NCBI GenBank assembly: GCA_904063045.1
Contig: CAJFCJ010000013.1
Coordinates: 974,156-1,038,155 of the forward strand
Direction: 5' to 3'
DNA length: 64,000 bases
From: Dimorphilus gyrociliatus
Taxonomy: Eukaryota; Animalia; Annelida
Numbering within the stretch: position 1 is the stretch's first letter; each line of letters begins with the position of its first letter. Both the position numbers and the translations under genes were made by a program. Of this stretch, positions 1 through 64,000 are shown piece after piece. The notes under the pieces were generated by a model. That model was not told the DNA's origin, searched no databases, and saw nothing but the letters and a program-made list of their open reading frames with translations.

Positions 1-20
1 TTTTCGTTTTTTTTTTCTAG

Positions 21-3000
21 TAACTTTGAAGTGCCTGGTATAAAGATTTTACATATTAATGATGTACCAACTTACGTAAAAAGAAGAAGGTCGGTGCCTA
101 GAAAAAGTCACTTTAAAACATTATCTACCGAGGAAGGTAACTTTCAGTTTATTTTTTTTATGTCATTACGCTATGTTTTTTTATTGTTTAACAGGCGCCG
201 CGTCATGGCGTGGTAAAAAACGTAATAGGCCAAAGAAAAAGCCCCCGGAAACGGTGCAACAAGGGACGGCAACAAATTCAGCAACATCTAAGGCTAAAGG
301 CAAGTAATTATTAAGTATTTTATGAACTTATGATAATTTCTTTTTCTGAACAGGCAACATGGTTGGCCTACCACGTGGTAACGCGGATTCTACTCAATCA
401 ACTACCACAGCACCAAATAACGTACCAAAAGTTGTAGAAAGACTTGAAAACATTGTTGCAGAAGATTTAAGGGTGCCTAGCGTTAAAGGTAAAAATTAAA
501 TATTTTATTGATGAAGCATTATTAACTTTAACTTTAAAAAAAGTCGAAAACGCATTCTTTTTCAAATTATACAATATAATTAATATAATTTGTTTTTTTT
601 ATTACAGCGGCAAGCAAGCTTCACGATAAAGAACCTAATGATAGACCAAATAACCAAGGAAAATCTAGTAATTCGGTTACGGAACAAGCGACTGTTAACG
701 CAATAGGCAAGCTTTGGCAATTGCTTTTCATTGAAAATTATCTCATCTATTTGATTTTACAGCGTTCGGAGGGCCATGTTCTACAGCAGGTCAAAACAAA
801 GAAGTGAAAAAGCAACAAAAACCCCTAAGATCGATTCTAAAAAGAGCCAAACCGAATATTACATGCAAGCATTTTCAAATTATTCAGTACAATTATATAA
901 TTTTTACTTTTTATTACAGCAACCGAATTACCATGTAGTAATGTAGATAACAGTGAAGAAAAACGTAGTGACCCAACTATAACAACACCTGTACACTATA
1001 TTACAGGTAAGCACTCGAAATTTATCAACTATTTCATATAACTATTTTATACAAACTAAATAATATTTTTATAATACAGTAGTCCAAGCACCGCGTTGTA
1101 CGGGAGATTTCTATAAACAGCGACAAAAATTGCCGATGAGCGGAGGAAAACCAAACGCCCCGATTAGATTCTTACACAGAATAGGCAAGTGCTTACTAAT
1201 TATTTCAAGTAATAGTACAATTTGAACTTTTTTATAGTGAATCCATTACTAGTCTGTAGTACATCTGCAAACGAACATTGCCTTGAAAACTCTTACAAAT
1301 TACAAATTAATCATGGCAAACGAAGGGTATCATGGGCAGTACCATTGGCAAATTTTTCGACAGGTAAATATTTACCAGTTTTTCATGTTTATCTCATGAT
1401 GTTTTTTTTTATATCAAATTACAATTCTTTAATGCAGATCTAAACGAACGTACTGATAAAGGACCAAACAATATACCGGACAGAACTGGAAAACCTAATG
1501 AATCGACTACCATGACAACGGGACCACACACCGTAGGCAAGTATTTACAAATTATTACAAGCAACTATCTTTACTTAATATTTCCTAATATAGTTATCAC
1601 CGTATCCGATTTAAACGAAGGTCCAAATGTACCCTCTAATATAAAGTCTAACAATGCATCAAATAGAACAGAGAGGCTTGATAAACAGATTGCTACAGGC
1701 AAATATTTACATATTATTAAAAGTCAATTACATAACCTATATTTTACAGTGCCGGCTTCTAATGCAGATCTAAATGAACATGATAGTAATGCTCCCAACA
1801 ATATACCAAACAGACCAGGAATTCTTGATAAACCAGTTGCAAATAATGCGACACCTTACGCTACAAGTAAGTATTTAAACATTATTTCAAACAATTACGT
1901 AATCTTGTCTTTTTCATACAGTAGTCGAATTTAAACGTGACACAATTTCAAATGAACATGTACCTAGTACACCTACAGCTAATAAATTAGCATCAAATGC
2001 TTTGTGTAAGTATTTACAAATTAATATTTGCAGCTATGTGGTATTGTTTTCAATATAGTGCTTCGAAGACCATGTTGTGAAAAACCTAAAATTGGATCTC
2101 ATAATCTGGATGGATCTATGGATTTACTTTCACAAGCAATGGCAATCTGTTCCATAGGTTAGCATTTACAAATTGCTTCGTACAACTGTATAATATTTAT
2201 TTTTATGTTTTAGTACCCTCGGATGAAGAAGCCGATGGGTACGAGGCTGGTAATGAAGACCTGCCAAGGGAGCAGATTGCAGGAACAGATGAAGTTAATC
2301 CTAGGAGTAAGTACTTGTAAATTATTTCATACAATTATATTATCTATTCTTTTGCGCTACAGCCATCCAGATTATGAGATCCAAACCCGATTCAAACAGA
2401 TATTCTAATGGGGAAACGAACAGTACATCACAGAATCAGACCCAAAGAGAATCCAGTTCTTCAACCACCCGAAACGTGTCTACTAATGTTTTGTGTAAGT
2501 ATCTACAAAATAGTTTGAATAACTACATGAACTTACTTTTGTATTACAGTATCCAAAATAGCACATTTTATAGCAAAACAGTGCAGACGTGGGTCGAATG
2601 AACTGGAAAGAACTATTGCCAAAAACATAAGCAAGTGTTTACTAGTTAATTTATACAAGTGCATAATCATTCTTTTGTGATACAGTACTGCAGATGGCGT
2701 ATTTTGTAGCAAGTAGAAACATATCCAACAAAACGAACAATAGACAAGAAAATATTTCGAATACAACATGCAAGTATTTACAAGTTATTTCAAATAATTA
2801 TACAATCGTTCGTTTTTATTACAGTTGCTCAATTAGTAAATTATATCGAAAATCAAAAAATGCGTGCTAATAGTATTTCGAACGAGCAAGGACAACCAAA
2901 TCAGCCAAGTCAAAATATAATGGCTAATGTTAAATGTAGGTATTTAAAAATTGTTTCATACAACTATATTATCTTTCTTTTGTAATGCAACCAGCCGAAG

Positions 3001-6000
3001 TGGTAAATCAAAAAGAAACTTCAAATAGGAATACGCCTAATGGACCAAAACGACCAAATACTGAAACAGCAACTGCCAATGCTACCCGTAGGTATTTACT
3101 GATTATATCGAAACAATTGTACAACTTTTCTCTTATCATTCGATAAGGTCAAAACACACTTTCTAAAGAGCCAAAAATCCAGGCCAGTCAAAATACGCCA
3201 ATTACAGAACCAATGACGCCTAATAATGATATGGGTATGGGCAAGTATTCACTTATTGTTTCTTACAATAATTTGATCTTTTCTTTATTTAATAGTTAAA
3301 ATCTCTTGCTCTGATTTAAACACAAAGGAACTACTCTATGAAAGTCCCAACGATTTACTAAATAGCCAAGATGAGACTGCCGAAAAAAGACACGATCTGA
3401 GGTCTGATGAAACTGAGTAAGTTTTATTTTATACATTTGCCAAAAATAAGCAAATATTAGAAATGTAATCTATAAGAAGGAAGGAAAAATTATTGATAAA
3501 TTATTTTATATAATATCTTAACTAAATTGCTAATGCTTTTACAGGATCGAGAGCGAAACAGGAGTAATTGGCCAAGTTCAGGTTGTCGAGAGAATATCAA
3601 ATAGAGGGGATAAAGAACAGAACCCAACAAATTCTCTCGAGAAAAATGCCAAAACGCCTATAAGTAATGAGAAAAAAGAAATTCGAAACCAACTAGAAAA
3701 GCGATCCCGTCAAGTGTTGATATCAGAAAATGAAGAAAAAGATTGTAGAGTTTTGGAAGGAGCTGAAGGCCGGAGACAGCAAATTTTGGAAAAACAATTA
3801 AAACGAATAAAGAAAGAGATAAAACGACTTAAAAAAAAGCAATACGTGCGGAAGGAGGAAGACAGATGTCAATTGATGCAAACAGTAGAAAACGATAAAA
3901 AACAACAGATACATGAAAAGGAGAGTGTTGATCATCATATAGACAGAGGTTCAAAACGGGAAGAAGTAAATCGTCAACAAATAAAACTAGAGGAAGAGAA
4001 AGAAAGCACTCTTGAACAGAGAGAAGGAGGGCGAAGTGATATAGAGTATGCGCGAAGAATGATTTTGATAGAAAAATTACGGGAACCAGAACACACAAGT
4101 CAAAATCAAAACGGAGAAAAGGGCAAGGTCCAAAGAAACACAGACCCTGGAGCTTTTGCTAAATACTTGGAAGAGATGAAAGCCTCCAAAGAGAAAAAGA
4201 TAGAAAAAGTACGCGATGCAAAACGTAGAAGCTTACTAAAGCAAAAGGAGGAATACATGAGGCGCCAACAAATCGTAAAAGAACAACTTCTGCGTCGTGA
4301 AAAAGAAAATCCTGAACTAATGCAAAAAGAAAGAAGCTGTTCTATACACATGGCAGAGATGGAAAATCAGCGAAAACTGAGACAGAAAGAAAGAGATCGT
4401 AAGAGGAAATCTGATGAAAAAGTCCCAGCTGAAGTAGAACTTAATGCAAAATTCAGGTGCTTACGAAATACAAAGGGAGAAAACATTGGTCGCCAACAAA
4501 TGGAAAATGATCAACAGCTATGTCCTGAGCATAAAAAACTAAATCAAAAACACTTTGACGCAGAAGAGAGCGACAAGCAAAAGTACCCTGAACGGGCAAA
4601 ATCTGACGAGATAAGCGAACAGGAGCTTCATGACGTAGCAGACGGCGATGAAGAGTATCCTGATCGAGCAAAGTCTGACAAAATAAGCGAACAAGAAAAT
4701 CATGATCTGGCAGAGAGTAATGATCAGAGCGATGAAGAATATACTGATCGAGCAAAATCTGGTAAACAGAGCGCACAAGAATATCATGACGCGTCAGAGA
4801 CTGATGATCAAAGTGACGAAGAATATCTTGAACAAGCAAAATCTGACGAGATAAGCGAAGAAGAAAATCATGATCTGGTAGAGAGTGATGATCAAAGCGA
4901 TGAAGAATATCTTGAACAAGCAAAATCTGACGAGATAGACGAAGAAAATCATGATCTGGCAGAAACTGATGATCAGAGCGATGAAGAATATACTAATCGA
5001 GCAAAATCTGGTGAGCAGAGCGCACAAGAACACCATATCGTGTCAGAGACTGATGATCAAAGTGATGAAGAATATCTTGAACAAGTAAAATCTGACGAGA
5101 TAAGCGAAGAAGAAAATCATGATCTGGCAGAGAGTGATGATCAAAATGATGAAGAATATCTTGAACAAGCAAAATCTGGCGAGATAAGCAAAGAAGAAAA
5201 TCATGATCTGGTAGAGACTGATGATCAAAATGATGAAGAATATCTTGAACAAGCAAAATCTGGCGAGATAAGCAAAGAAGAAAATCATGATCTGGTAGAG
5301 ACTGATGATCAAAGCGATGAAGAATATCCTGAACGAGCAAAATCTGGCGAGATAGACGAAGAAAATCATGATCTGGTAGAGACTGATGATCAAAGCGATG
5401 AAGAATATCCTGAACGAGCAAAATCTGGCGAGATAAGCGAACAAGAAATTTATATGGCAGAGAGTGACGATCGAAGCAACGAAAATCATTTTGAACGAGC
5501 AAAATTTGGTGAGCATAAAAAAACAGAATATCCTGAGCTAGCAAAATTGGATGAGCAAAGAGATAAAGTACATATTGGAGTAGGAATATTTGACGAATAT
5601 ATTAAAACAGAACCTCATGACGTAGAAGAGAGCGATGATCAAAGCGAGAAACAATATCGTAAACGTGCAAAATTTGATAACCAAATCGATGAAGAATATC
5701 CTGTACTAGCAAAACTTCCCAAATCTAGCAAACCAGCAAACCATTACGGAACGCAAACGGATGAGCAGAGCGAGAAAGTATTTCCTGGAACAGCAATAAC
5801 TGACCAAAGCAGTAATCAGGAGCATCGTCGCATGGCAAAGGGCAATGAGCAAAAGGAGAAAAAATGTCATGGACTAGCAGAATTTGCTAGATTTAAGCAA
5901 TATCAAATAGATCGCATTAAAGAGAGAGAGGAGCAAAGTCAGAAAGAATATTCTATACGAGCAAAACTTGCGGCACAAAGAGAGAAAGAAAAACTTGGAC

Positions 6001-8255
6001 TAACAAGAATTGACCAAAGCAGTAATCAAGAACATCGTCACATGGCAAAGAGCGATGAGCAAAAGGAAAAAGAACATCCTGAACTAGACAGATTTGGCAG
6101 ATTTCAAAAATATCAACTGCATCGCATAAAAATGTCTGATGACGAAAGTCAGAAAGATTATCGTGTTCGAACAAAACTTGCAGCACAAAGAGAGAAAGAA
6201 AAACTTGGACTAACAAGAATTGACCAAAGCAGTAATCAAGAACATCCTCACGTGGCAAAAAGCGATGAGAGAAAGGAGAAAGAACATCTCGGACTAGAAA
6301 AATTTGGCAGATTTCAAAAATATCAACTGCATCGCATAAAAATGTCTGATGACGAAAGTCAGAAAGAATATTCAGTACAGGCAAAACATGCAGCACAAAG
6401 AGAGAAAGAAAATCCGGGACCAGCAAGAACTGCCCAAAGAAGTAATCAGAAACATCGTCACATGGCAAAGAGTAATGAGCAAAAGGAGAAGAAATATCAT
6501 GAACAAGCAGAATTTGCTAGATTTAAGCAATATCAGCTGAATCGCATGAAAGAAAGAGAGAAGCAAAATCAGAAAGAATACTCTGTACGAGAAAAACTTG
6601 CCGCACAAAGAGAGAAAGCAAATCCTGGACCAGCAAGAATTGATCAGTGCAGTAATCAAGAACTTCGAAACGTGGCAAAGAGTAATGAGCAAACGGAAAA
6701 AGAACATCCTGGACTAGCAAGATTTTCCAGATTTCAAAAATATCAACTACATCGCATAAAAATGTCTGATGACGAAAGTCAGAAAGAATATTGTGTTCGA
6801 GCAAAACTTGCAGCACAAAGAGAGAAAGAAAATCCTGGACCAGAAAGAACAGACCAAAGTAGTAATCAGGAACATCGTCACATGGCAAAGAGCGATGAGC
6901 AAAAGAAAAAAGAACATCCTGGATTAGCAGAATTTGCTAGATCTAAGCAATATCAAATACATCGCATGAAAGAGAGGGAGAAGCAAAATCAGAAAGAATA
7001 TTCTGTTCTAGCACAACCTGCCACGCAAAGAGAGAAAGAAAATCCTGGACCAGCAAGAATTGACCTATGCAGTAATCAGGAACATTATCACGTGACGGAG
7101 AATGATGAGCAAAAGGAGAAAGAACATCCTGGACTAGAAAGATTTGGCAGATTTCAAAAATATCAACTGCATCGCATAAAAATGTCTGATGACGAAAGTC
7201 AGAAAGATTATCGTGTTCGAACAAAACTTGCAGCACAAAGAGAGAAAGAAAAACTTGGACTAACAAGAATTGACCAAAGCAGTAAACAAGAACATCGTCA
7301 CATGGCAAAGAGCGATGAGCAAAAGGAAAAAGAACATCCTGAACTAGACAGATTTGGCAGATTTCAAAAATATCAACTGCATCGCATAAAAATGTCTGAT
7401 GACGAAAGTCAGAAAGAATATTCAGTACAGGCAAAACATGCAGCACAAAGAGAGAAAGAAAATCCGGGACCAGTAAGAACTGCCCAAAGCAGTAATCAGG
7501 AACATCGTCACATGGCAAAGAGTAATGAACAACAGGAGAAAGAATATCCTAGACAAACGAGATTTTCCAGATTTAACAAATATGATCATCATTGCGTGAG
7601 AGAAAGTGATGAGCAAAGTCGGCCAAAATATCCTGTACGAGCAAGGTTTGCCGAGGAAATACGAAAACAATATCTTAAACCAACTACTTATGACCCATTC
7701 AATAATCAAGAACTTCGTAATGTGGCAGAGAGCGATGGGCAAAGGCGGAATGAATATCCTGGAGAAGCAAGATTTGACCAATTCATGAATCAAGAACACC
7801 GTCATATAGGAGAGAACCATGAGCAAAAGGAGAAAGAACATCCTGGACTAGCAAGATTTTCCAGATTTAGTAAACAACTACATCGTTACGAAGCTCAGAG
7901 CGATGAGCAAACGCAGAGAGAATATTCTGCACGAGCAAAATTGATTGAGCAAAGAGATAAAGTGCATCTTGGAGTAGGAAGATTTGCGAAATACATTAAA
8001 AAGGAACCCAGTGACGTAATAGATAGCGATGAGCAAAGTGAGAAACAATATCGTAAATGTGAAAAATTTGATGAGCAAATCGATGAAGAGTGTCCTAGAG
8101 CAGGAAGATTTAGCCAATTCACGAATCCAGAAAATCGTCACGTAGTAGAGAGGGAGGAGCAAAGCGAGAAAGAATATTGTGAACGTTCAAAATTTGATGA
8201 AGAAAGCGATGAAGAATATCCTGTACTAGCCAGATTTTCCTTCAATGTTGAGTGA
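21..8255 (+). CDS. Multi-exon gene (5' end outside window) for a very large, low-complexity, charged and probably disordered repeat protein
   Basis: Hand-spliced exons 21-136, 195-299, 354-488, 608-706, 763-864, 920-1006, 1080-1184, 1238-1363, 1438-1536, 1594-1698, 1750-1866, 1922-2005, 2059-2157, 2214-2306, 2363-2494, 2550-2630, 2686-2769, 2825-2935, 2995-3087, 3148-3240, 3296-3416 and 3545-8255 give one stop-free frame that joins the 1513-aa ORF at 3714. No recognisable globular domain. Confidence 0.8.
195..3416 (+). repeat. Tandem array of homologous exon-intron units (about 140-190 bp each)
   Basis: Introns share a consensus of roughly GYAAGTATTTACAAATTATTTCA...CAACTAT...TTTTATTACAG. The 19 exons from 195 to 3240 are all multiples of 3 (81-135 nt) and phase 1-1. 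Confidence 0.8.
4570..5500 (+). repeat. Coding tandem repeat, acidic 27-28 aa unit (DEEYLEQAKSDEISEEENHDLVESDDQS), about 11-12 copies
   Basis: Directly visible in DNA (81-84 bp period) and in the translation. Confidence 0.95.
5800..7690 (+). repeat. Coding tandem repeat, 70-aa (210 bp) unit, about 9 copies
   Basis: Unit starts near 5802, 6012, 6222, 6432, 6642, 6852, 7062, 7272 and 7482 (210-bp period; QSSNQEHRHMAKSDEQKEKEHP...). Confidence 0.95.
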
Positions 8256-52689: not shown

Positions 52690-52808
52690 AGAATACGGCA
52701 CCCAGTGTTCCCAGGCGGTCTCCCATCCAAGTACTGACTGGGCCGTACGTCATTTAACTTCGGTGATCGGACGAGAACCGGTGCTTGTAACGTCGTATGG
52801 CCGTATAC
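52690..52808 (-). rRNA. 5S: 5S rRNA, canonical type
   Basis: 119-nt 5S (GTATACGGCCATAC...GATCACCGAAGTTAA...AGTACTTGGATGGGAGACCGCCTGGGAA...) followed by an oligo-T terminator. Confidence 0.97.
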
Positions 52809-52994
52809 AATTGACTACTTAAATTTGCACTATTTATACAATAACTATTTTTAACCTTCTTTACTTTAAATCTGTCTAACAATATAATGGAATATCGTTG
52901 TCGTAGTCTACAAATGGGAGCATATATTAAAACGTGATAGGTATTGCGTTTCATGACTATTGGTTTTCCATTCACGGAGCATCATCATACGATT

Positions 52995-53176
52995 TAGCAT
53001 CATCATCAATCTTTTCGACAAGAACGATATAGTTATCGCCAGAGTCAAAACCTAGATAGTGGCTGATCTAACATTGGCTTTTGAACAAAGGCCATAGTTT
53101 ATTGAAGATGTGCAGAGGAAGAAGATGGAAAAGTATTGGGATATCGTTCTTGTCGAAAAGATTGATGATGATGCTA
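52995..53176. repeat. Perfect 36-bp inverted repeat with a 110-bp spacer (possible TA-flanked MITE or fold-back)
   Basis: 52995-53030 TAGCATCATCATCAATCTTTTCGACAAGAACGATAT is the exact reverse complement of 53141-53176. Confidence 0.9.
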
Positions 53177-53869
53177 TGTCGTCGAAGAATTCCGATAGAG
53201 TGATAAAGATGGTGTCGGATGACCCCACTGACGTCGTCTCACTACTAACGAAGGCATATAAACTCTGCTGGGCATCTTACAAGTCTACACGAGAATACTC
53301 ATGGAATGCTAGACTTTACAATGTTCTAATCGTATTGTACCGGCACACAGGGTCGGTAAGAGGCACTTGCCTAATATAATTAACATAGGAGAAGTTACTC
53401 CAATAGAATCAGAAAAAGACACCAACAGCGGAGATACGATATGGAAACAGTAATGTCAAGCAAATTGAAAGTGACTCTTAACTCTTTGTTTAATTGTACT
53501 ATTTCTCATATTTTCTTAATTATAAGTAAGAAATGCTTACGTTTTTGTCTTAAACTTTTACTCACTCCAACTTCACTCGATTTTCTCCAACTTGTCGATC
53601 TATGTGATAACGATAATCAAGCGAAAGATTAATATTATATACATTTCTTTCCGTATTTTTCGTGGAGTGAAGAAGAGTAATATCACATTGATAACTAAGG
53701 TGAAAGATATTGTAGGACGTCGATAAAAGTTCCCTCAAAGAATACGCATATTGTAGATCATAGTAATGCCATCTATAGTTTTTAAGTCGTTTTTCTGGTT
53801 TTTTGAGTATTTTAACGAAGTCGATACTCTTTTAAGGATATGAAGAAAAAATGGTAGATATAGGTGTTG

Positions 53870-53899
53870 TATAAATAGCGCAAATCTAAGTAGACTATT
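53870..53899 (+). promoter_or_regulatory. Conserved -30 TATA-like element upstream of canonical 5S genes (example copy)
   Basis: TATAAATAGCGCAAATCTAAGTAGACTATT directly precedes +1. A similar TATAAAT/TTTAAAT box lies at about -30 of the canonical copies. Confidence 0.75.
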
Positions 53900-54018
53900 G
53901 TATACGGCCATACGACGTTACAAGCACCGGTTCTCGTCCGATCACCGAAGTTAAATGACGTACGGCCCAGTCAGTACTTGGATGGGAGACCGCCTGGGAA
54001 CACTGGGTGCCGTATTCT
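53900..54018 (+). rRNA. 5S: 5S rRNA, canonical type
   Basis: Identical 119-mer plus T-run. Confidence 0.97.
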
Positions 54019-54228
54019 TTTTATCTTTTTTTTCTTCTCTTTCTCTCAATTTTTCTTCCTTTCCTATAAAATGAAATATTTACGAGAGGTCTTCGAATGT
54101 TTTCTTTATGATTCAACGAGAAAACCATGTCATTAACATTTTTTGACATGAATTGAAAGAAGAGATTTTGTGTCTATTGGACTTAATGCTATATTTGATA
54201 CATGAACCTTAACATAGGCTACCTTATT

Positions 54229-54347
54229 GTATACGGCCATCTGACGTTACAAACACCGGTTCTCGTCCGATCACCGAAGTTAAATGACGTACAGCCCAGT
54301 CAGTACTTGAGTAGGAGACTTTCTGGGAACACTGGGTGCCGTATTCT
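54229..54347 (+). rRNA. 5S: 5S rRNA, variant type
   Basis: 10 substitutions relative to canonical, mostly compensatory in helices II and IV. T-run terminator present. Confidence 0.9.
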
Positions 54348-54716
54348 TTTTATCTTCTTTTATATTCCGTTTATTTTTCAACTAAAGTTCAACGTTATTT
54401 TCATTTTATTTTTGATTATTAAAGATTGAATTTACTTTCAATCTTAGAATATTCGAAAAGTTGCAGATCTTCTCATTCGTGTTTGTAATCTTTTCGCAAT
54501 GATTTTCGCAAACTTTGCTGATTTTTCGTTGACTTTATTAATTCTGTCACATCTTTATCGTCAATATGAATATGAGTACTAAAAATGAATTAGAGGATAA
54601 AAACTAAAGACAACAACAGGGAATGAATGACTGAGAAAGGAAAAAAGAGAAAAAAGAATAAGGCACCACAGGAAAAAGACAGATGGTGGAAAGAAAGTAG
54701 AAGAAAAAAATGAAAA

Positions 54717-54835
54717 AGAATACGGCACCCAGTGTTCCCAGGCGGTCTCCCATCCAAGTACTGACTGGGCCGTACGTCATTTAACTTCGGTGATCGGACG
54801 AGAACCGGTGCTTGTAACGTCGTATGGCCGTATAC
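54717..54835 (-). rRNA. 5S: 5S rRNA, canonical type
   Basis: Identical 119-mer. Confidence 0.97.
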
Positions 54836-55436
54836 AATTGACTACTTAGATTTGCGCTATTTATACGACATCTATATTTAATTATATTCACCCCAAGTCG
54901 TTTACGTTTCCTTTGAATTGTATATTGCAGTAATCGCTCAATGTTTATTATACTAGTTTATTTAGCAAATAAAGATTACTCTTTTTTCGTATAAATATGC
55001 AAATGCAATCATATTAAGTTATCGAACAAAGTCATATCATAAAGACTAGGTACCGTATTTTTTTTTCTTTTTTTCCTCTCTATTCTCCTCTTGACTCTCT
55101 ATCCGACTAGTACAAATGGTTGAAACTCTGTTATACGGTCAAACGATGTGTTCTTTTTGTTTTTTTCTTTCTTCTTGAGCTCTCTTAAAATTTCACAAGC
55201 GTCTTCTCAGATTTTTACTTGAAATAGAAGAGTGATAAACTCAAGCAAGTTAGGCTAATGATGATTGAAAGGTGAAATGTTGCTGCCATTTGCAGACGAA
55301 AACAACGATGTTTCACTATATTGTTAAAAAGATTTAAGAGATTGAAGGTTAAATATATCTGTTGTATAAATAGCGTAAAGTTAAGCACAGTGTTGTATAG
55401 GTGCTGTATAAATAGTGCATAGTTAAGTAGTCAATT

Positions 55437-55555
55437 GTATACGGCCATACGACGTTACAAGCACCGGTTCTCGTCCGATCACCGAAGTTAAATGACGTAC
55501 GGCCCAGTCAGTACTTGGATGGGAGACCGCCTGGGAACACTGGGTGCCGTATTCT
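55437..55555 (+). rRNA. 5S: 5S rRNA, canonical type (upstream TATA element duplicated)
   Basis: Identical 119-mer. TGTATAAATAG occurs twice upstream (about 55365 and 55405). Confidence 0.97.
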
Positions 55556-57081
55556 TTTTCTTTTTTTTCTTCTGTTTTCCTTCCGTTCCCTGTCTTTTTC
55601 TTCTTAATCTTAATTTTTTATCCACGACCAATCATTTTGATTTCATTTTCTTTTTCCGCCAGTCTTTCTTCATGCTCTTTAAGCCATACATTTTTGCGAG
55701 ATGACAGAAAGAGGAGACTTTTTAAAAGATGTTGAAGGAAATAATTTTCGTTCATCTATTGAAGTTGTCTGTTGTATAACTCAGCGTGTATTTCTATGTA
55801 AGACATTTGGTATTGCTCATATATGTAATTGAGCGATAGTTGTTTTTTTCCTTCATTATATTTGATTTGCATTACACTACTGTATTTTCGGCGTTTACGC
55901 TGTTTCGAGAATCGATGCTCAAGTACTGATGCTTGTGATGTGTATCCTTTTACATATATATATATTTGCTTCTAATTTTCGCTTTGCTGGCGAAATCGAA
56001 TGAAAATATTGTTGTCAAAAAGGGATGTTAAACTGAGATTCTGATTTGAAAAAATGCGTGTTATGATGAGGAATTGTTATCAAGTAAATATTATAGTAAA
56101 CCACTTTGTGTTTTAACGCCAAAGTATAACAAGAGTTTCTTCCTTTGTTTCTCTTAAAAAGATTTGTTGACCGCACTTTTTCATCACTATTAAATAATCA
56201 GTGAGAAGTGTCAATGACTTTACCTTAACGTTATAGAATAGTAGATAATTGGTTAATAATACCCTCTATAGTATGGTTGAAATAAATATTAGGATTTGTA
56301 AGGTTAAGAATCCATTGGATAAATGGCCCAAAAATTGACGTGGAGTGAATATGATTTTTTAAAACTAAATAACATAACCAAACTTGGAAATTTAATAAAG
56401 AGGGAAGTGCTAAAGTAAACTTAGTTTTCAAAGACGATATCAATAAAATAATTATAGTACCATGATAATGTAGGATTTAGGGCAACTAAATTTAGGATTT
56501 ATGAAAATATTAGAATAAATATTAGATTTATTAAAATACTCAAATGCTTCTAGTAGATGCTATGCTTGCGTTTCAACAATATTTAATACTTGAGAAACTT
56601 AGTTAGATTTGTTTATGAATACTTTTAGTAGCAAGGTAGACTAACTACTGTCACTGTCAAAGTGCTCCGCTATCTATCATAACATTTCAGGCTTGATACA
56701 AAAACTGTATACAAATTGATATAAAATATATAGGAAATTTCCTAAACAAGCATAACCGAAAGCTAAAAATTAAAAGAGCAAGAGCTATGTTAACAATGGA
56801 AATGTGCCTATAAATTTCTGGCAAGAAATTAGAATAATGAAAGGTGAAAAGTAAATCTAACAGCCAGTAATGTTTCTGTTGACAGATAAGCTTACAATTT
56901 CATTATTAAATGATGTTATTGTTGAAAAGTTTAAATTTTTTTAAAAATTGTGATAAAGTGAAGCCTATGCCGCCATTTGTAGGTGAAGACAAAAACGTTC
57001 CATTATATTGTTAAAAAGTTTTAAGAGAAAGAAGATTAAATATAAGTGTTCTATAAATAGCGGAAAGTAAAGTAGTCAATT

Positions 57082-57200
57082 GTATACGGCCATACGACGT
57101 TACAAGCACCGGTTCTCGTCCGATCACCGAAGTTAAATGACGTACGGCCCAGTCAGTACTTGGATGGGAGACCGCCTGGGAACACTGGGTGCCGTATTCT
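57082..57200 (+). rRNA. 5S: 5S rRNA, canonical type
   Basis: Identical 119-mer. Confidence 0.97.
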
Positions 57201-57569
57201 TTTTCATTTTTTTCTTCTACTTTCTTTCCACCATCTGTCTTTTTCCTGTGGTGCCTTATTCTTTTTTCTCTTTTTTCCTTTCTCAGTCATTCATTCCCTG
57301 TTGTTGTCTTTAGTTTTTATCCTCTAATTCATTTTTAGTACTCATACTCATATTGACGATAAAGATGTGACAGAATTAATAAAGTCAACGAAAAATCAGC
57401 AAAGTTTGCGAAAATCTTTGCGAAAAGATTACAAACACGAATGAGAAGATCTGCAACTTTTCGAATATTCTAAGATTGAAAGTAAATTCAATCTTTAATA
57501 ATCAAAAATAAAATGAAAATAACGTTGAACTTTAGTTGAAAAATAAACGGAAAATAAAAGAAGATAAAA

Positions 57570-57688
57570 AGAATACGGCACCCAATGTTCCCAGAAAGTC
57601 TCCTACTCAAGTACTGACTGGGCTGTACGTCATTTAACTTCGGTGATCGGACGAGAACCGGTGTTTGTAACGTCAGATGGCCGTATAC
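57570..57688 (-). rRNA. 5S: 5S rRNA, variant type
   Basis: Same 10 changes plus C104T (G-U wobble in helix V). Confidence 0.9.
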
Positions 57689-57900
57689 AATAAGGTAGCC
57701 TATGTTAAGGTTCATGTATCAAATATAGCATTAAGTCCAATAGACACAAAATCTCTTCTTTCAATTCATGTCAAAAAATGTTAATGACATGGTTTTCTTG
57801 TTGAATCATAAAGAAAACATTCGAAAAACTTCCCGTAAATATTTCATTTAATAGGAAAGGGAGAAAAATTAAGAGAAAGAGAAGAAAAAAAAAGATAAAA

Positions 57901-58019
57901 AGAATACGGCACCCAGTGTTCCCAGGCGGTCTCCCATCCAAGTACTGACTGGGCCGTACGTCATTTAACTTCGGTGATCGGACGAGAACCGGTGCTTGTA
58001 ACGTCGTATGGCCGTATAC
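57901..58019 (-). rRNA. 5S: 5S rRNA, canonical type
   Basis: Identical 119-mer. Confidence 0.97.
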
Positions 58020-58627
58020 AATTGACAACATAAATTTGCGCTATTTATACGACATTTATATTTAATTACATTCACCCCAAGTCGTTTAAGTTTCCGTTGA
58101 ATTGTATATTACAGTAATCGGCTTAATGTTTATTATACTAGTTTATTAACTTTACGCCATTTATACAACAATCATATCAAACTTCTTTCAACCTAGGAAC
58201 ATCAACTCAAAAAAAATGCTTAAAAAAAGCAAAGTGATTTCGATGGTATAAGTGATATAGACGCTTTTAAATGCGTATTTTTAAAAAAACCTCTTATTGA
58301 TATTACAGTTTTTTCCTCCACCAAAATGATAAAAAGAGCTTAGTACAATAAATTATCACCCACTCGATTATCGCTAATATCTAAATCGATAAGTTGGAGA
58401 AAATCGAGTGAAGTTGGAGTAACTAGAAGATTTTTCCGTAAAATTTCAAAATAAAAATCTGACATACTGGAAGTTGAAGGCTAAAACTGAACGATTGCCT
58501 CGATTTGGTTGACAGATATGTTTCCGTTGTTTTATTTAATGAAGATATTACTGAAATATTCATGTTTTATGAATAATTTTTATAAATGTACATGTGGTAT
58601 AAATAGCGAAAAGTTAAGTAGTCAATT

Positions 58628-58746
58628 GTATACGGCCATACGACGTTACAAGCACCGGTTCTCGTCCGATCACCGAAGTTAAATGACGTACGGCCCAGTC
58701 AGTACTTGGATGGGAGACCGCCTGGGAACACTGGGTGCCGTATTCT
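58628..58746 (+). rRNA. 5S: 5S rRNA, canonical type
   Basis: Identical 119-mer. Confidence 0.97.
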
Positions 58747-59006
58747 TTTACCCACTTTTTCGCCTTCTTCTTTCTCTCCAAACTCTCTCTTATTTATTCT
58801 AATCGAATTATCTATGATAAGTAAGACCCTGTTGTATTTTTTTGGTTTTATTAGTTTATCTTTGTTTATCACCTTACCACATTTTCCTCAAATTTTTCTT
58901 TCAATTAAAAACTGACTAATAAGAAGAGAATCTCTTTATAATCTTCATTTTTCATCGTTTATAGATGAAAGAGAACTGAAAAGGGCCAGAAGTCATATTC
59001 TATGTA

Positions 59007-59445
59007 GATGAATCTCCCATCTCGACTCCTTCGTTGATTTTACAAGTCAAACACGTTTCCGGATTGTAAGTCGAACTTTCGTAAGTAGTGAAGCATCTCG
59101 AGCAAATAAACTTTGCCGAGGTTATGCTTACTTTTCGACCTTCGCCTTTCGGAATAGTTCTCAATCTAAGATAAGTTTCGAGCTGATCCTCATTGTAGAC
59201 TCTCGCCGCAACCTTAGCTGGTAAATTTAAGCAAGCGCTGCCCATGAACGGTTTCGTATCGAAAGCTGCTTCGCAAGGCGAACATCCAATACCTGTTCAA
59301 CAAAAACGGATATATTAATAAAACTCTTATCTATTAGTTGAAAAAAATCTTACTATGATTAAACGAAGAGTTGATTTCCCATTGAATATACTTTAAACCT
59401 TCAACCCAATTATCAGTAAAATCACTTTTCATTTTCATCCAGCTA
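59007..59445 (-). pseudogene. Inverted 439-bp duplicate of part of the integrase-derived gene (49664-50102), intron included
   Basis: The reverse complement matches end to end with no mismatch seen by eye, including intron 49756-49816. Confidence 0.95.
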
Positions 59446-59765
59446 GCGCAACATAAAGCAAATTTTTTGATAAAATGAAAAAATGAAACACTTTTCGTTG
59501 AAATGTAAATGGTTGTCCGCAAACAATATCTCTCTTTAAACTACTCGTTCAGCTGTAAAAATGATAACTTCATTGTACGAACAAGAACTGATTCTATGAA
59601 TGTCTTGCAGCGAAAATTTCTACATTGAATTAACGTCAAAAAATGTTAATCAAATGGTTTTCTCGTTTAATCATAAAGAAAATATTCGAAAAACTTCCCG
59701 TAAATATTTCATTTAATAGGAAAGGGAGAAAAATTAAGAGAAAGAGAAGAAAAAAAAAGAATAAA

Positions 59766-59884
59766 AGAATACGGCACCCAGTGTTCCCAGGCGGTCTCCC
59801 ATCCAAGTACTGACTGGGCCGTACGTCATTTAACTTCGGTGATCGGACGAGAACCGGTGCTTGTAACGTCGTATGGCCGTATAC
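59766..59884 (-). rRNA. 5S: 5S rRNA, canonical type
   Basis: Identical 119-mer. Confidence 0.97.
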
Positions 59885-60536
59885 AACAGACTGCTTAATT
59901 TTACGGTATTTATACCAATTTTAATTTTTTTAAATTATTTATACAACATGAAAACTTTACAGTTAATATCTTTAAGTAAGAAAACGAAAATATATCTATC
60001 ACAAGAAACCACGTGAGCTTTTAGTTTTCGTCTTCATCTTTCATCATCCTAGTTTCTTTAGAAGCTTTTCAGAAACTTAATAAACACTCAATCTCACTTC
60101 AAACACATTCGACTAACTTTCGTACATCTAGATAATAATGATAATCGGATGGAAAACTTTTCTATTATATACAGTTCTCTTTGTTATTTTCGTGAAGAAA
60201 AAAGAAGTGTTTTATAATTGTCAAATTAGGTGCAAGATATTGTCGGAGCTTAAAAGGTATTCGTCTAAAAACATGCGCTGAATAAAAAGTCTAGCAATAT
60301 CACAGATGCTATTAAAATCATTTTGTTTTATTTTGAGCATTTTATTAGACTCGATATTCGTATACGATTTAAAAAGAATGAGGTTAGTGGTAGATAAAGA
60401 ACTGAACTCCGGTGTTGTTTCTGTTGATACATAGCTTTTGATTTGATATTGAATGATATGAATTAAAGTTCACATTATTCAAAGAATTTAATGAACCCAT
60501 ATGTGATATAAATAGCCCATAGTCAAGTAGACTATT

Positions 60537-60655
60537 GTATACGGCCATACGACGTTACAAGCACCGGTTCTCGTCCGATCACCGAAGTTAAATGACGTAC
60601 GGCCCAGTCAGTACTTGGATGGGAGACCGCCTGGGAACACTGGGTGCCGTATTCT
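60537..60655 (+). rRNA. 5S: 5S rRNA, canonical type
   Basis: Identical 119-mer. Confidence 0.97.
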
Positions 60656-61223
60656 TTTACCTCTTTTTTCGTGAATTTTCTGTCCGTTCACTGTCGTTTT
60701 CCTCTCAATCTTTATTCATTTTCCTCGATAAGTCATTTCGATTGTATTTTTTCAACGAACCAAAAGATGTCTGAGCTATATTTCAGAAGAAAAGATGTTG
60801 AAGATATTGTATGTAAAGTTGAAATAATCACTTTGCCTAAACTGACTTTTCTGCTGACTTCGGCCAACTTTTCCTATTTTTGATCTCTCAATTTATCTCT
60901 TTTTTTGGATTCTATTTCCATTTCTTCTATCTGTTTACGCATACGCCTTTTCTCTTAGAGTTTTCTTTAACTGTATAAAACTATCTAGAAGGCGACAATA
61001 TATATTAAACGAAGAAACATAAAAATGTATTTCTATATAAAAAAAGAAACGAGTCGTCCATAGTGTTGAATCTGTTTTGAGAGTCCAATTGTGCTAGAAA
61101 GCAAACCAGTTGGTTTTGAAATCAGTGATAAACGATTTTCTTTGAGTAACGGAAACATCACTGAAAACTAAAATGGAACACATATGAAAGTTAGGACAGT
61201 TGACTGTTGAAAAAAAGACAAAA

Positions 61224-61244
61224 AGAATACGGCACCCAGTATAC
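61224..61244 (-). pseudogene. 5S gene with a 98-nt internal deletion (only the two ends remain)
   Basis: The plus strand AGAATACGGCACCCAGTATAC fuses the 3' end to the 5' end over a shared GT. The terminator A-run and upstream AATAGTCTACTT...TTTAAA flank remain. Confidence 0.9.
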
Positions 61245-61670
61245 AATAGTCTACTTAAATTTATGATATTTAAATGCAGTATAATTAATACCTAGTGACG
61301 TTTTAAAGATATTCTCCCCAAATAGCTTATGGTAATAGTCAATTCAGAAAGTAAAAAGAAAAAGAAAAGAAAAAAGGCAAAATTGACTTCACAGATAACG
61401 ATTTCAACATTCTCCATTCAATCTCTCAATCTCATTTAAATTTGCTGCATTATTGAAGTCATGTTCCCCTTGTTTAATGGTAGTTAATGCACATTGATAA
61501 ATTATCGATATTGTCAACCGTTTCTGAATATTGGATTTAACTAAATTTTATGATTCAACAAGAAAACCATGTCATTAACATTTTTTGACATGAATTGAAA
61601 GAAGAGATTTTGTGTCTATTGGACTTAATGCTATATTTGATACATGAACCTTAACATAGGCTACCTTATT

Positions 61671-61789
61671 GTATACGGCCATCTGACGTTACAAACACCG
61701 GTTCTCGTCCGATCACCGAAGTTAAATGACGTACAGCCCAGTCAGTACTTGAGTAGGAGACTTTCTGGGAACATTGGGTGCCGTATTCT
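61671..61789 (+). rRNA. 5S: 5S rRNA, variant type
   Basis: Same variant as 57570-57688. Confidence 0.9.
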
Positions 61790-62158
61790 TTTTATCTTCT
61801 TTTATATTCCGTTTATTTTTCAACTAAAGTTCAAAGTTATTTTCATTTTATTTTGAATTATTAAAGATTGAACTCACTTTCAATCTTAGAATATTCGAAA
61901 AGTTGCGGATCTTCTCATTCATGTTTGTAATCCTTTCGCAATGATTTTCGCAAAGTTTGCTGATTTTTCGTAGACTTTATTTATTCTGTCACATCTTTAT
62001 CGTCAATATGAAAATGAGTACTAAAAATGAATTAGAGGATAAAAACTAAAGACAACAACAGGGAATGAATGACTGAGAAAGGAAAAAAGAGAAAAAAGAA
62101 TAAGGCACCACAGGAAAAAGACAGATGGTGGAAAGAAAGTAGAAGAAAAAAATGAAAA

Positions 62159-62277
62159 AGAATACGGCACCCAGTGTTCCCAGGCGGTCTCCCATCCAAG
62201 TACTGACTGGGCCGTACGTCATTTAACTTCGGTGATCGGACGAGAACCGGTGCTTGTAACGTCGTATGGCCGTATAC
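62159..62277 (-). rRNA. 5S: 5S rRNA, canonical type
   Basis: Identical 119-mer. Confidence 0.97.
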
Positions 62278-63117
62278 AACAGTCTACTTAGATTTGCGCT
62301 ATTTATACAACAGCTATATTTAACCTTTTTTCTTCATATTCTTACAGAACATTGACTCCAACAAATAATGGCAGAGAGTCCTTTCTATCACTGACGTATA
62401 AAAGTATTTTTTTTAAATTTTAAGTACTTGCAATTCTTATATTAAAAAATATTGACAAACCAATTCTATTGCCCTTTTTGCAATGTAACATATTTTTCTT
62501 ATCTAGTTTGTATTACAAAAATTTTCAGTTTTATTAAAGAAAAGTTGCTCTCTTATTGAGTGATCTATTGAGTAGTAGATAATGTGTTAAATAGAGACTT
62601 TTAAAACAAGAACGTAAGCATTTCTTACATATAATTAAGAAAATATAATTAAGAATTTAAGAGTGACTTTCAATTTGCTTGGGGTTACTGTTCGAATGTC
62701 TTTTTCTTATTCTATTGTCAACTGATAATGTAATCCCTGTCATATTTTAATATAGGCGATATTGGTCGAGCATAGGGTTACACTTTCGGCAGCTTCCATT
62801 AATCTGGAAGAGTAATTTATATTCATAAGATAAAGACTATAACATTTTTGTGGTAGATCTCAAATGGCTTATAGTAGTTCGATTGTTGAGCTTCAATAGT
62901 TTGGATATGAGCCGGGATTGTCAATAGTTTGACAGATATTGGATTCGTAAAGACAATGTAATGACTAGAAGAGAGCAGAAGGAAAAAAATGTAATGGAAA
63001 ATGAAGTGAAAATCATCATTAGTTGAAAGAATTAAGTTTATGAGTTTTGTACAGAAATCTAGAATGACAGTTTTGAGAGGCAAAGAGAACGAAATTAGAA
63101 AGAAAGCAGTCGAAAAA

Positions 63118-63236
63118 AGAATACGGCACCCAGTGTTCCCAGGCGGTCTCCCATCCAAGTACTGACTGGGCCGTACGTCATTTAACTTCGGTGATCGGAC
63201 GAGAACCGGTGCTTGTAACGTCGTATGGCCGTATAC
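63118..63236 (-). rRNA. 5S: 5S rRNA, canonical type
   Basis: Identical 119-mer. Confidence 0.97.
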
Positions 63237-63399
63237 AATAGTCTACTTAACTATGCGCTATTTAAACAGCATCTGTATCTACCATTTTTTCTTCATATCC
63301 TTAAAAGAGTATCGACTTCGTTAAAATACTCAAAAAAACAGAAAAATGACTTAAAAGCTATAGATGGCATTCCTATGATCTACAATATGCGTATTATTT

Positions 63400-63606
63400 G
63401 GATGTGGTAGAAAACGGCCATAAATCTATGGTTTTACCCTAACCCTAACCCAGCCCTTGTTTTTACCTAACCTGTTTGAATACCCCTAACCCTTAGATGG
63501 GACCCTCCTAAGAACATATCAATAGTTATCTTATTCCTCCTAACCATTTCCCAGGCTGAAATCTAACTTTGAAATATTTCATTTATGGCCGTTTTCGACC
63601 GGTCCC
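63400..63606. mobile_element. 207-bp MITE (Mutator-like: G...C ends, 9-bp TSD) with internal CCCTAA repeats
   Basis: TSD GTATTATTT at 63391-63399 and 63607-63615. Subterminal inverted repeat GAAAACGGCCATAAAT at 63410-63425 and 63581-63596. A paralogous empty site is at 53737-53745 (reverse complement GTATTCTTT). Confidence 0.8.
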
Positions 63607-63943
63607 GTATTATTTGAGGGAACTTTTATCAACATCCTACAATATCTTTCACTTTAGTTATCAATCAGATATTACTCTTCTTCACTTCATGGAAAAGACA
63701 GAAAGAAATGTATATAATACAAATCTTTCGCTGGATTATTGTTATCGCATAGATCGATAAGTTTGAGCAAATCGAGTAAAGTGAGTAAAAGTTTGTTCAG
63801 ATATGAACGATTACCTCGATTTGGTTGATAGATATGTTTCCGTTGTTTTATTTAATGAAGATATTACTGAAATATTCATGTTTTATGAATAATTTTGATA
63901 AAGGTACATGTAGTATAAATTGTGCATAGTTAAGTAGACTATT

Positions 63944-64000
63944 GTATACGGCCATACGACGTTACAAGCACCGGTTCTCGTCCGATCACCGAAGTTAAAT
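63944..64000 (+). rRNA. 5S: 5S rRNA, canonical type, truncated by the window end
   Basis: First 57 nt identical to canonical. Confidence 0.93.

Follow-up and report, generated by a model that had tools for sequence, protein, structure and literature searches.

The gene at the 5′ end of the window (the whole 64,000-nucleotide stretch analysed here, positions 974,156 to 1,038,155 of contig CAJFCJ010000013.1 in assembly GCA_904063045.1 of the annelid Dimorphilus gyrociliatus) contains an array of small exons separated by 21 introns, nine of which carry GC in place of GT as splice donor in the DNA. Eight of them are in use as GC-AG introns in a public transcript, six as established by individually listed joints and two by depth arithmetic, while the ninth (3241) is unused. 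We consider it probable (roughly 0.7) that the array stems from a founder exon-intron unit with a GC-AG intron, that tandem duplication multiplied this unit within an orphan gene under weak constraint, and that the usual splicing machinery removes its introns. Positions below are those of the window unless another locus is named.

All 21 introns could be re-derived from the DNA between positions 137 and 3544 on the + strand (Table 1), and 17 of them are 51–60 nt long. They delimit 20 small exons. The 19 lying between 195 and 3240 are all phase 1-1, have lengths that are multiples of 3 (81–135 nt) and are each open in the phase 1-1 frame alone, the other frames running into stops. Skipping would hence be frame-neutral for every one of these 19 symmetric exons, as expected of cassette exons. 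Two of the GC introns, 1537–1593 (57 nt) and 1699–1749 (51 nt), are themselves in-frame and without stops. On the symmetry of the exons and on these two introns the re-derived model agrees with what the original prediction had described. With the introns taken out, no stop interrupts the frame over 2305 codons, and it continues into a large exon (3545–8255). This joined frame was used solely for the stop check, and database searches were done exon by exon. Positions 1–8255 (+ strand) hold most of the gene, and the array forms the 5′ third of what is a lineage-specific gene of D. gyrociliatus with a protein of ~2300 residues. In the 1.5 kb upstream of the window there is a TATA-like box with an ATG ~46 nt downstream of it, and a GTTAGT donor comes after 26 coding nucleotides. 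The gene probably starts at this ATG, the first intron being predicted from the DNA.

To establish how the array is spliced, we used the only public RNA run that contains the locus (X1, 2017; library type not recorded, sample stage and sex unknown), available as contigs that were aligned to positions 1–5000. One 3440-nt contig spans positions ~65–4847 with zero mismatches, removes 21 of 21 introns and keeps all 20 array exons. It has 21 joints for the 21 introns, 15 of them listed individually and six not shown. For the six GC introns at listed joints, all placements permitted by the joint ambiguity were enumerated, and GC..AG was the sole G..AG placement in each case. The six unlisted joints were recovered from the depth table, in which the depth of a bin equals 119.5 times the fraction of that bin covered by the contig. 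The exon model reproduces every depth bin after allowing for left-shifts by the aligner, and places two further GC introns.

The remaining GC donor, at 3241, is bypassed. The bin 3174–3340 has a depth of 75.8, which matches splicing from a GT at 3235 (75.9) and not from the GC at 3241 (80.1). Furthermore, the contig is 6 nt shorter across exons 15–20 than the GC-3241 model requires. A shifted acceptor at 3001 was excluded as the source of this deficit by the depth arithmetic, and a shift of the acceptor 6 nt into exon 20 by the absence of an AG there. The original prediction had cautioned that an in-phase GT lies 6 nt upstream of 3241, and this is the donor that the transcript uses. Use of the GC donors thus holds for eight introns but fails at 3241, where this GT replaces the GC. 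The possibility that the spliced contig derives from an assembled retrocopy was ruled out because positions 1–136, which hold the second coding exon (21–136), have a single genomic occurrence; the contig is therefore read as mRNA.

Within the DNA, GC donors were found at 300, 707, 865, 1185, 1537, 1699, 2631, 2770 and 3241, with GT at the other 12 array donors and GA or GG at none. These counts confirm those first reported, as does the lack of a G at −1 in the GC donors at 865, 2631 and 2770. The GC donors read GCAAGT, GCAAGC or GCAAAT, and AAG at +3 to +5 is kept in eight of the nine, compared with six of the 12 GT donors. Between 7 and 9 of 11 positions in the GC donors are complementary to the 5′ end of U1 small nuclear RNA (snRNA), and most of these donors pair on through +7/+8. 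None of the array donors begins with the U12-type 5′ motif (RTATCCTT). Hence, the array GC donors resemble the ordinary donors of U2-type GC-AG introns. The fact that three of them are spliced without a −1 G suggests that pairing on the intron side (+3 to +8) may do most to define minimal introns in this annelid, with C and T at +2 being nearly equivalent.

The array introns form a family of their own. In alignment, homology is clear for ~17 of the 21, and the shared consensus extends ~35 nt past the donor. The two long introns 489–607 and 3417–3544 are barely recognisable, so that the claim of 21 homologous introns stands for about 17 and not for these two. Anchored pairwise identity over intron positions +7 to +34 is 0.55, compared with 0.32 expected from base composition, and the flanking exons reach 0.31–0.35 against 0.28 expected. 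A model of the intron family (R1) gives 23–43 bits for introns of the array, and no other place in the 267 kb that were searched in full exceeds 13 bits. When R1 was run over the 77.9-Mb genome, with 150 first-look candidates scored, all 15 significant matches fell at C13:974455–977450, which is the array itself. Likewise, the intron consensus pattern with up to 3 mismatches matches within the array alone. Because the family is confined to one locus, it is neither a generic intron motif of this genome nor an introner-like mobile family. RNAalifold, used to look for a fold that joins the intron 5′ and 3′ ends, predicts no consensus pairs.

The exons share in this relationship to some extent. 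Exon pairs 8/10, 2/10, 3/8 and 4/5 are alike as protein (z 5–8, maximum 7.8), similarity being detectable for some pairs only. Third-codon-position identity in alignable exon segments is 0.47, which is near the intron identity of 0.55, and exons and introns therefore seem equal in age. Slower evolution of introns than of exons is therefore claimed in softened form only, since in-frame indels and weak constraint on the exons account for most of the contrast. Comparison of the copies thus supports one exon plus its intron as the unit that would have multiplied, by local tandem duplication. The proposal that tandem exon duplication spread the GC donor is supported by the homology of the introns, their confinement to the locus and the richness of that locus in GC donors. 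The neighbouring introns 18 and 19 (2936–2994 and 3088–3147) both have an odd GTAGGT donor, the family CAG is mutated in both, and the acceptor lies 4 nt beyond its position in each. This looks like a recent duplicate of a unit whose lost acceptor had already been repaired.

The direction of change at donor +2 was assessed from the columns of the intron alignment. Nine of the 17 short introns have C at +2 and the other eight have T (53% C). Three C-majority intron columns retain C in 53–71% of copies, whereas the mean share of C in T-majority columns of the intron interior is 6% and its maximum 18%. As the frequency of C at +2 resembles that of C-majority and not of T-majority columns, an ancestral C drifting to T is more likely than a T repeatedly mutated to C. 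We infer that C and T at +2 are close to neutral in the array. The original prediction had spoken of a T/C-toggling donor; its spread with the duplications is retained here, but one-way drift from C to T is likelier than a two-way toggle.

Taken together, we favour the following course of events. The founding unit would have comprised a ~100-nt phase 1-1 exon and a ~55-nt intron, most likely of the ordinary U2-type GC-AG kind, and each local tandem duplication would have copied the GC donor along. Afterwards, the C at +2 would have drifted toward T at about the rate of other intronic C sites, which would have left the nine GC sites in the DNA and the eight in use. The GC donors would be read by normal U1 snRNA, in introns that are near the minimal size for efficient splicing in this genome. 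The exons would be included together in the main transcript, and the GC donors would represent a tolerated inheritance and no regulatory device.

Several points weigh against this explanation. Full inclusion was observed in one contig-level library of one unknown stage or sex. The ancestral C derives from column statistics, and the intron tree gives no support either way, being star-like, with 7 changes needed for the GC label compared with ~6 in shuffles and no starred branch. The genome-wide GC-AG rate used for comparison is a rough indirect estimate and no junction census. Finally, three of the used GC donors lack the −1 G, a departure seldom seen in donors of this type that points to some aid beyond U1 pairing.

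The original prediction had proposed a combinatorial switch, in which weak GC donors on frame-neutral exons lead to skipping that tunes protein length, with retention as a further option; such a switch would act by stage or sex. The architecture of the array would permit this, as all 19 symmetric exons keep the frame when skipped and two GC introns are in-frame and stop-free. The three donors lacking the −1 G would fit weak sites, and the loss of the GC at 3241 to a nearby GT indicates that donor competition occurs here. Moreover, alternatively spliced sites of other animals contain more GC-AG introns than expected. However, the sole transcript evidence, a single contig, includes every one of the 20 exons and has exactly one joint for each of the 21 introns, and the depth bins agree with full inclusion. 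Neither exon skipping nor intron retention was seen in this one contig-level run, in which contigs may hide minor isoforms. In addition, the C at +2 changes as neutral C sites within the introns do, and nothing indicates that it is being conserved. The switch is hence not supported, and we regard it as unlikely. A narrower form, in which skipping or retention specific to a stage or sex (e.g. dwarf males) makes a disordered, fast-evolving protein longer or shorter and was missed by the single library, appears more doubtful still.

We then considered whether the GC-AG type is frequent throughout this genome, which would make the locus ordinary. GT-AG introns account for 98.3% of animal introns, and GC-AG introns for <1% to ~2% per animal genome (PMC7072748). 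The published median intron of D. gyrociliatus is 66 bp (PMC7854359), in agreement with the short introns here, and GC-AG introns are not discussed in that genome paper. The background rate was estimated in two indirect ways. In 295 kb outside the array, GNAAGT sites followed by an acceptor were required to have compatible frames open for at least 20 codons on each side but closed within the intron, and sites with GA or GG served as decoys. This test was passed by 26 of 140 GT candidates, 6 of 79 GC candidates and ~2% of the GA/GG decoys, which corresponds to a GC share of ~16% for donors of this class. The restriction to GNAAGT was needed for a usable test, as in a version with unrestricted donors real introns were surrounded by so many shadow candidates that the signal was lost (GT ~ GA). 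Over the whole genome, GCAAGT followed by TTTTNYAG at 34–64 nt occurs 430 times, compared with 365 at a far spacing of 234–264 nt; for GTAAGT the corresponding counts are 1083 and 586. The net counts of 65 ± 28 for GC and 497 ± 41 for GT give ~12% GC among GYAAGT-type short-intron donors, in agreement with the first estimate.

The overall GC-AG share is set below this class share because many weaker hexamers also serve as GT donors. We roughly estimate it at 2–4% of all introns, which is perhaps somewhat above the <1% reported for model animals (PMC7072748). These values lend the genome-wide explanation some substance. In the array, however, eight of 21 introns are GC introns in use (38%), and the GYAAGT class contains 6 GC and 5 GT donors. 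The array is thus ~4–5 times richer in GC than the class background and >10 times richer than the overall estimate, an excess that a formal P-value would overstate since the array units are not independent events. Both background estimates bear out that the locus is special for GC donors, and an ordinary locus in a genome generally rich in GC-AG introns is improbable. A further, well-supported GC-AG intron, on another contig, lies at the border between a VWA and an EGF domain (Table 1), which argues that the normal machinery handles GC-AG introns in this genome.

Octamer counts were also made over the whole genome and compared with reversed controls, a comparison that is uninformative for the GC-AG rate. 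Of the perfect donor octamer AGGTAAGT there are fewer copies than of its control (2255 compared with 4311), but the octamer AGGCAAGT is not depleted (1495 compared with 1145). The AG on the exon side seems to matter little to donors of this genome.

Insertion of introner-like mobile copies into a pre-existing reading frame would explain why the introns are more alike than their flanking exons and why the units lie ~155 nt apart. In contrast to what such an origin predicts, neither R1 nor the consensus pattern, within the scopes given above, matches outside the array, and the 19 exons share one phase, are multiples of 3 and include several homologous pairs. This origin is largely refuted at the level of the assembly, and we give it very little credence. 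Least credible of all is a variant U1 with G opposite donor +2 that reads the GC donors, a suggestion likewise refuted at assembly level and not borne out by the genome search, as none of the 13 U1 matches is changed at position 7 and the corresponding 5′-end pattern AYACTTGCCTGGC has 0 matches in the 77.9-Mb genome.

The 13 U1 matches consist of eight intact canonical copies, which start ATACTTACCTG, one variant (L009) and four truncated pseudogenes, and all keep the A at position 7, opposite donor +2. L009 is changed at positions 2 and 9, with position 7 intact. As position 9 pairs with donor −1, this copy would, judged by its sequence, favour A over G at −1. Three of the four truncated copies have the same sequence, as would be expected of dispersed pseudogenes or of copies within a repeat.

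The product of the large last exon is acidic and Lys/Glu-rich. No Pfam family was found for this exon, a word-indexed protein search returned no relatives, and the first 415 of its residues had no relatives among 1.84 billion representative proteins. The exon contains two tandem-repeat blocks (Table 1), and the whole gene is made from three generations of internal repeats. It is an orphan gene of repeats with a probably disordered protein. Several variant X1 contigs pile up from position 4693 onward. At the other end of the window, 15 clustered 5S rRNA genes lie on both strands at positions 52690–64000; lower-scoring 5S copies are present at 54229, 57570 and 61671.

Table 1. Coordinates of the array, its gene and the loci compared with it (window positions unless a locus is named; a slash marks the exon/intron border).
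Feature	Position	Strand	Detail
First coding exon (predicted)	ATG at L036:1379, at least 96 nt before window start	+	phase fits acceptor 19–20
Second coding exon	21–136	+	116 nt, phase 2 to phase 1; open frame, acceptor 19–20; contig covers ~65–136
Array introns 1–7	137–194, 300–353, 489–607, 707–762, 865–919, 1007–1079, 1185–1237	+	re-derived borders
Array introns 8–14	1364–1437, 1537–1593, 1699–1749, 1867–1921, 2006–2058, 2158–2213, 2307–2362	+	re-derived borders
Array introns 15–21	2495–2549, 2631–2685, 2770–2824, 2936–2994, 3088–3147, 3241–3295, 3417–3544	+	re-derived borders
GC-AG intron AAG/GCAAGT	300–353	+	joint 297>352, 6 ambiguous letters; GC..AG sole G..AG placement
GC-AG intron TAG/GCAAGC	707–762	+	listed joint
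GC-AG intron CAT/GCAAGC, no −1 G	865–919	+	joint 864>920 unambiguous, reads GC..AG
GC-AG intron TAG/GCAAGT	1185–1237	+	listed joint
GC-AG intron, 57 nt	1537–1593	+	listed joint
GC-AG intron CAG/GCAAAT, 51 nt	1699–1749	+	listed joint
GC-AG intron TAA/GCAAGT, no −1 G	2631–2685	+	bin depth: exon 2550–2630 exactly 81 nt
GC-AG intron CAT/GCAAGT, no −1 G	2770–2824	+	bin depth: exon 2686–2769 fits 84 nt
Intron 20 as spliced, GT donor GTATGG	3235–3295	+	homologous GC donor 3241 bypassed
Last array exon	3296–3416	+	121 nt
Large last coding exon	3545–8255	+	1569 codons; contig covers 3545–4847
Tandem-repeat block, 84 nt x 10.5 copies	4645–5518		83% identity; inside large exon
Tandem-repeat block, 210 nt x 8.6 copies	5772–7583		80% identity; inside large exon
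Background GC-AG intron AAA/GCAAGTAC	L022:1237–1339 = G000:C1:561237–561339	-	103 nt, phase 1; between VWA domain end and EGF domain start
Variant U1, full-length, 120 bits	L009 = G000:C3:2401789–2401954	-	5′ end AAACTTACTTGG instead of ATACTTACCTGG
Truncated U1 copies L010–L013	C65:4551–4712, C133:19672–19833, C133:34023–34184, C72:27410–27578		lose Sm site and 3′ stem

The array offers a natural example of a non-canonical splice signal brought to high local density through duplication and not selection. Gene predictors that accept GT-AG introns only would break the 2300-codon frame eight times. Furthermore, homologous introns of one transcript that differ mainly by C or T at +2 constitute a natural test of the cost of splicing from a GC donor. 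Beyond this test and the warning for gene prediction, the locus represents ordinary biology made from known kinds of element.

Tandem exon-duplication arrays that encode repetitive or disordered segments are known from the titin PEVK exons and the collagen triple-helix exons. The present array shares with them its runs of short, like-sized exons of one phase, the duplication of a unit and a low-complexity protein. It differs in its introns, which are minimal (~55 nt) and still recognisably homologous, and in a unit that carried a non-canonical donor; in addition, no alternative exon use was seen in the one library. Introner-like introns resemble the array in that many homologous introns of near-identical length lie between dissimilar exons. 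Here, in contrast, the family occupies one locus and the exons share phase and partial homology, so that exon and intron multiplied together. The closest counterparts of the individual introns are U2-type GC-AG introns, with which they share the GC start, the AG end, an otherwise consensus-like donor (AAGT at +3 to +6), exact removal in RNA and the absence of a U12-type 5′ motif. They stand apart from these in that three members are spliced without a −1 G, and in their concentration, with eight in one gene (38%) compared with the known <1% to ~2% per animal genome (PMC7072748).

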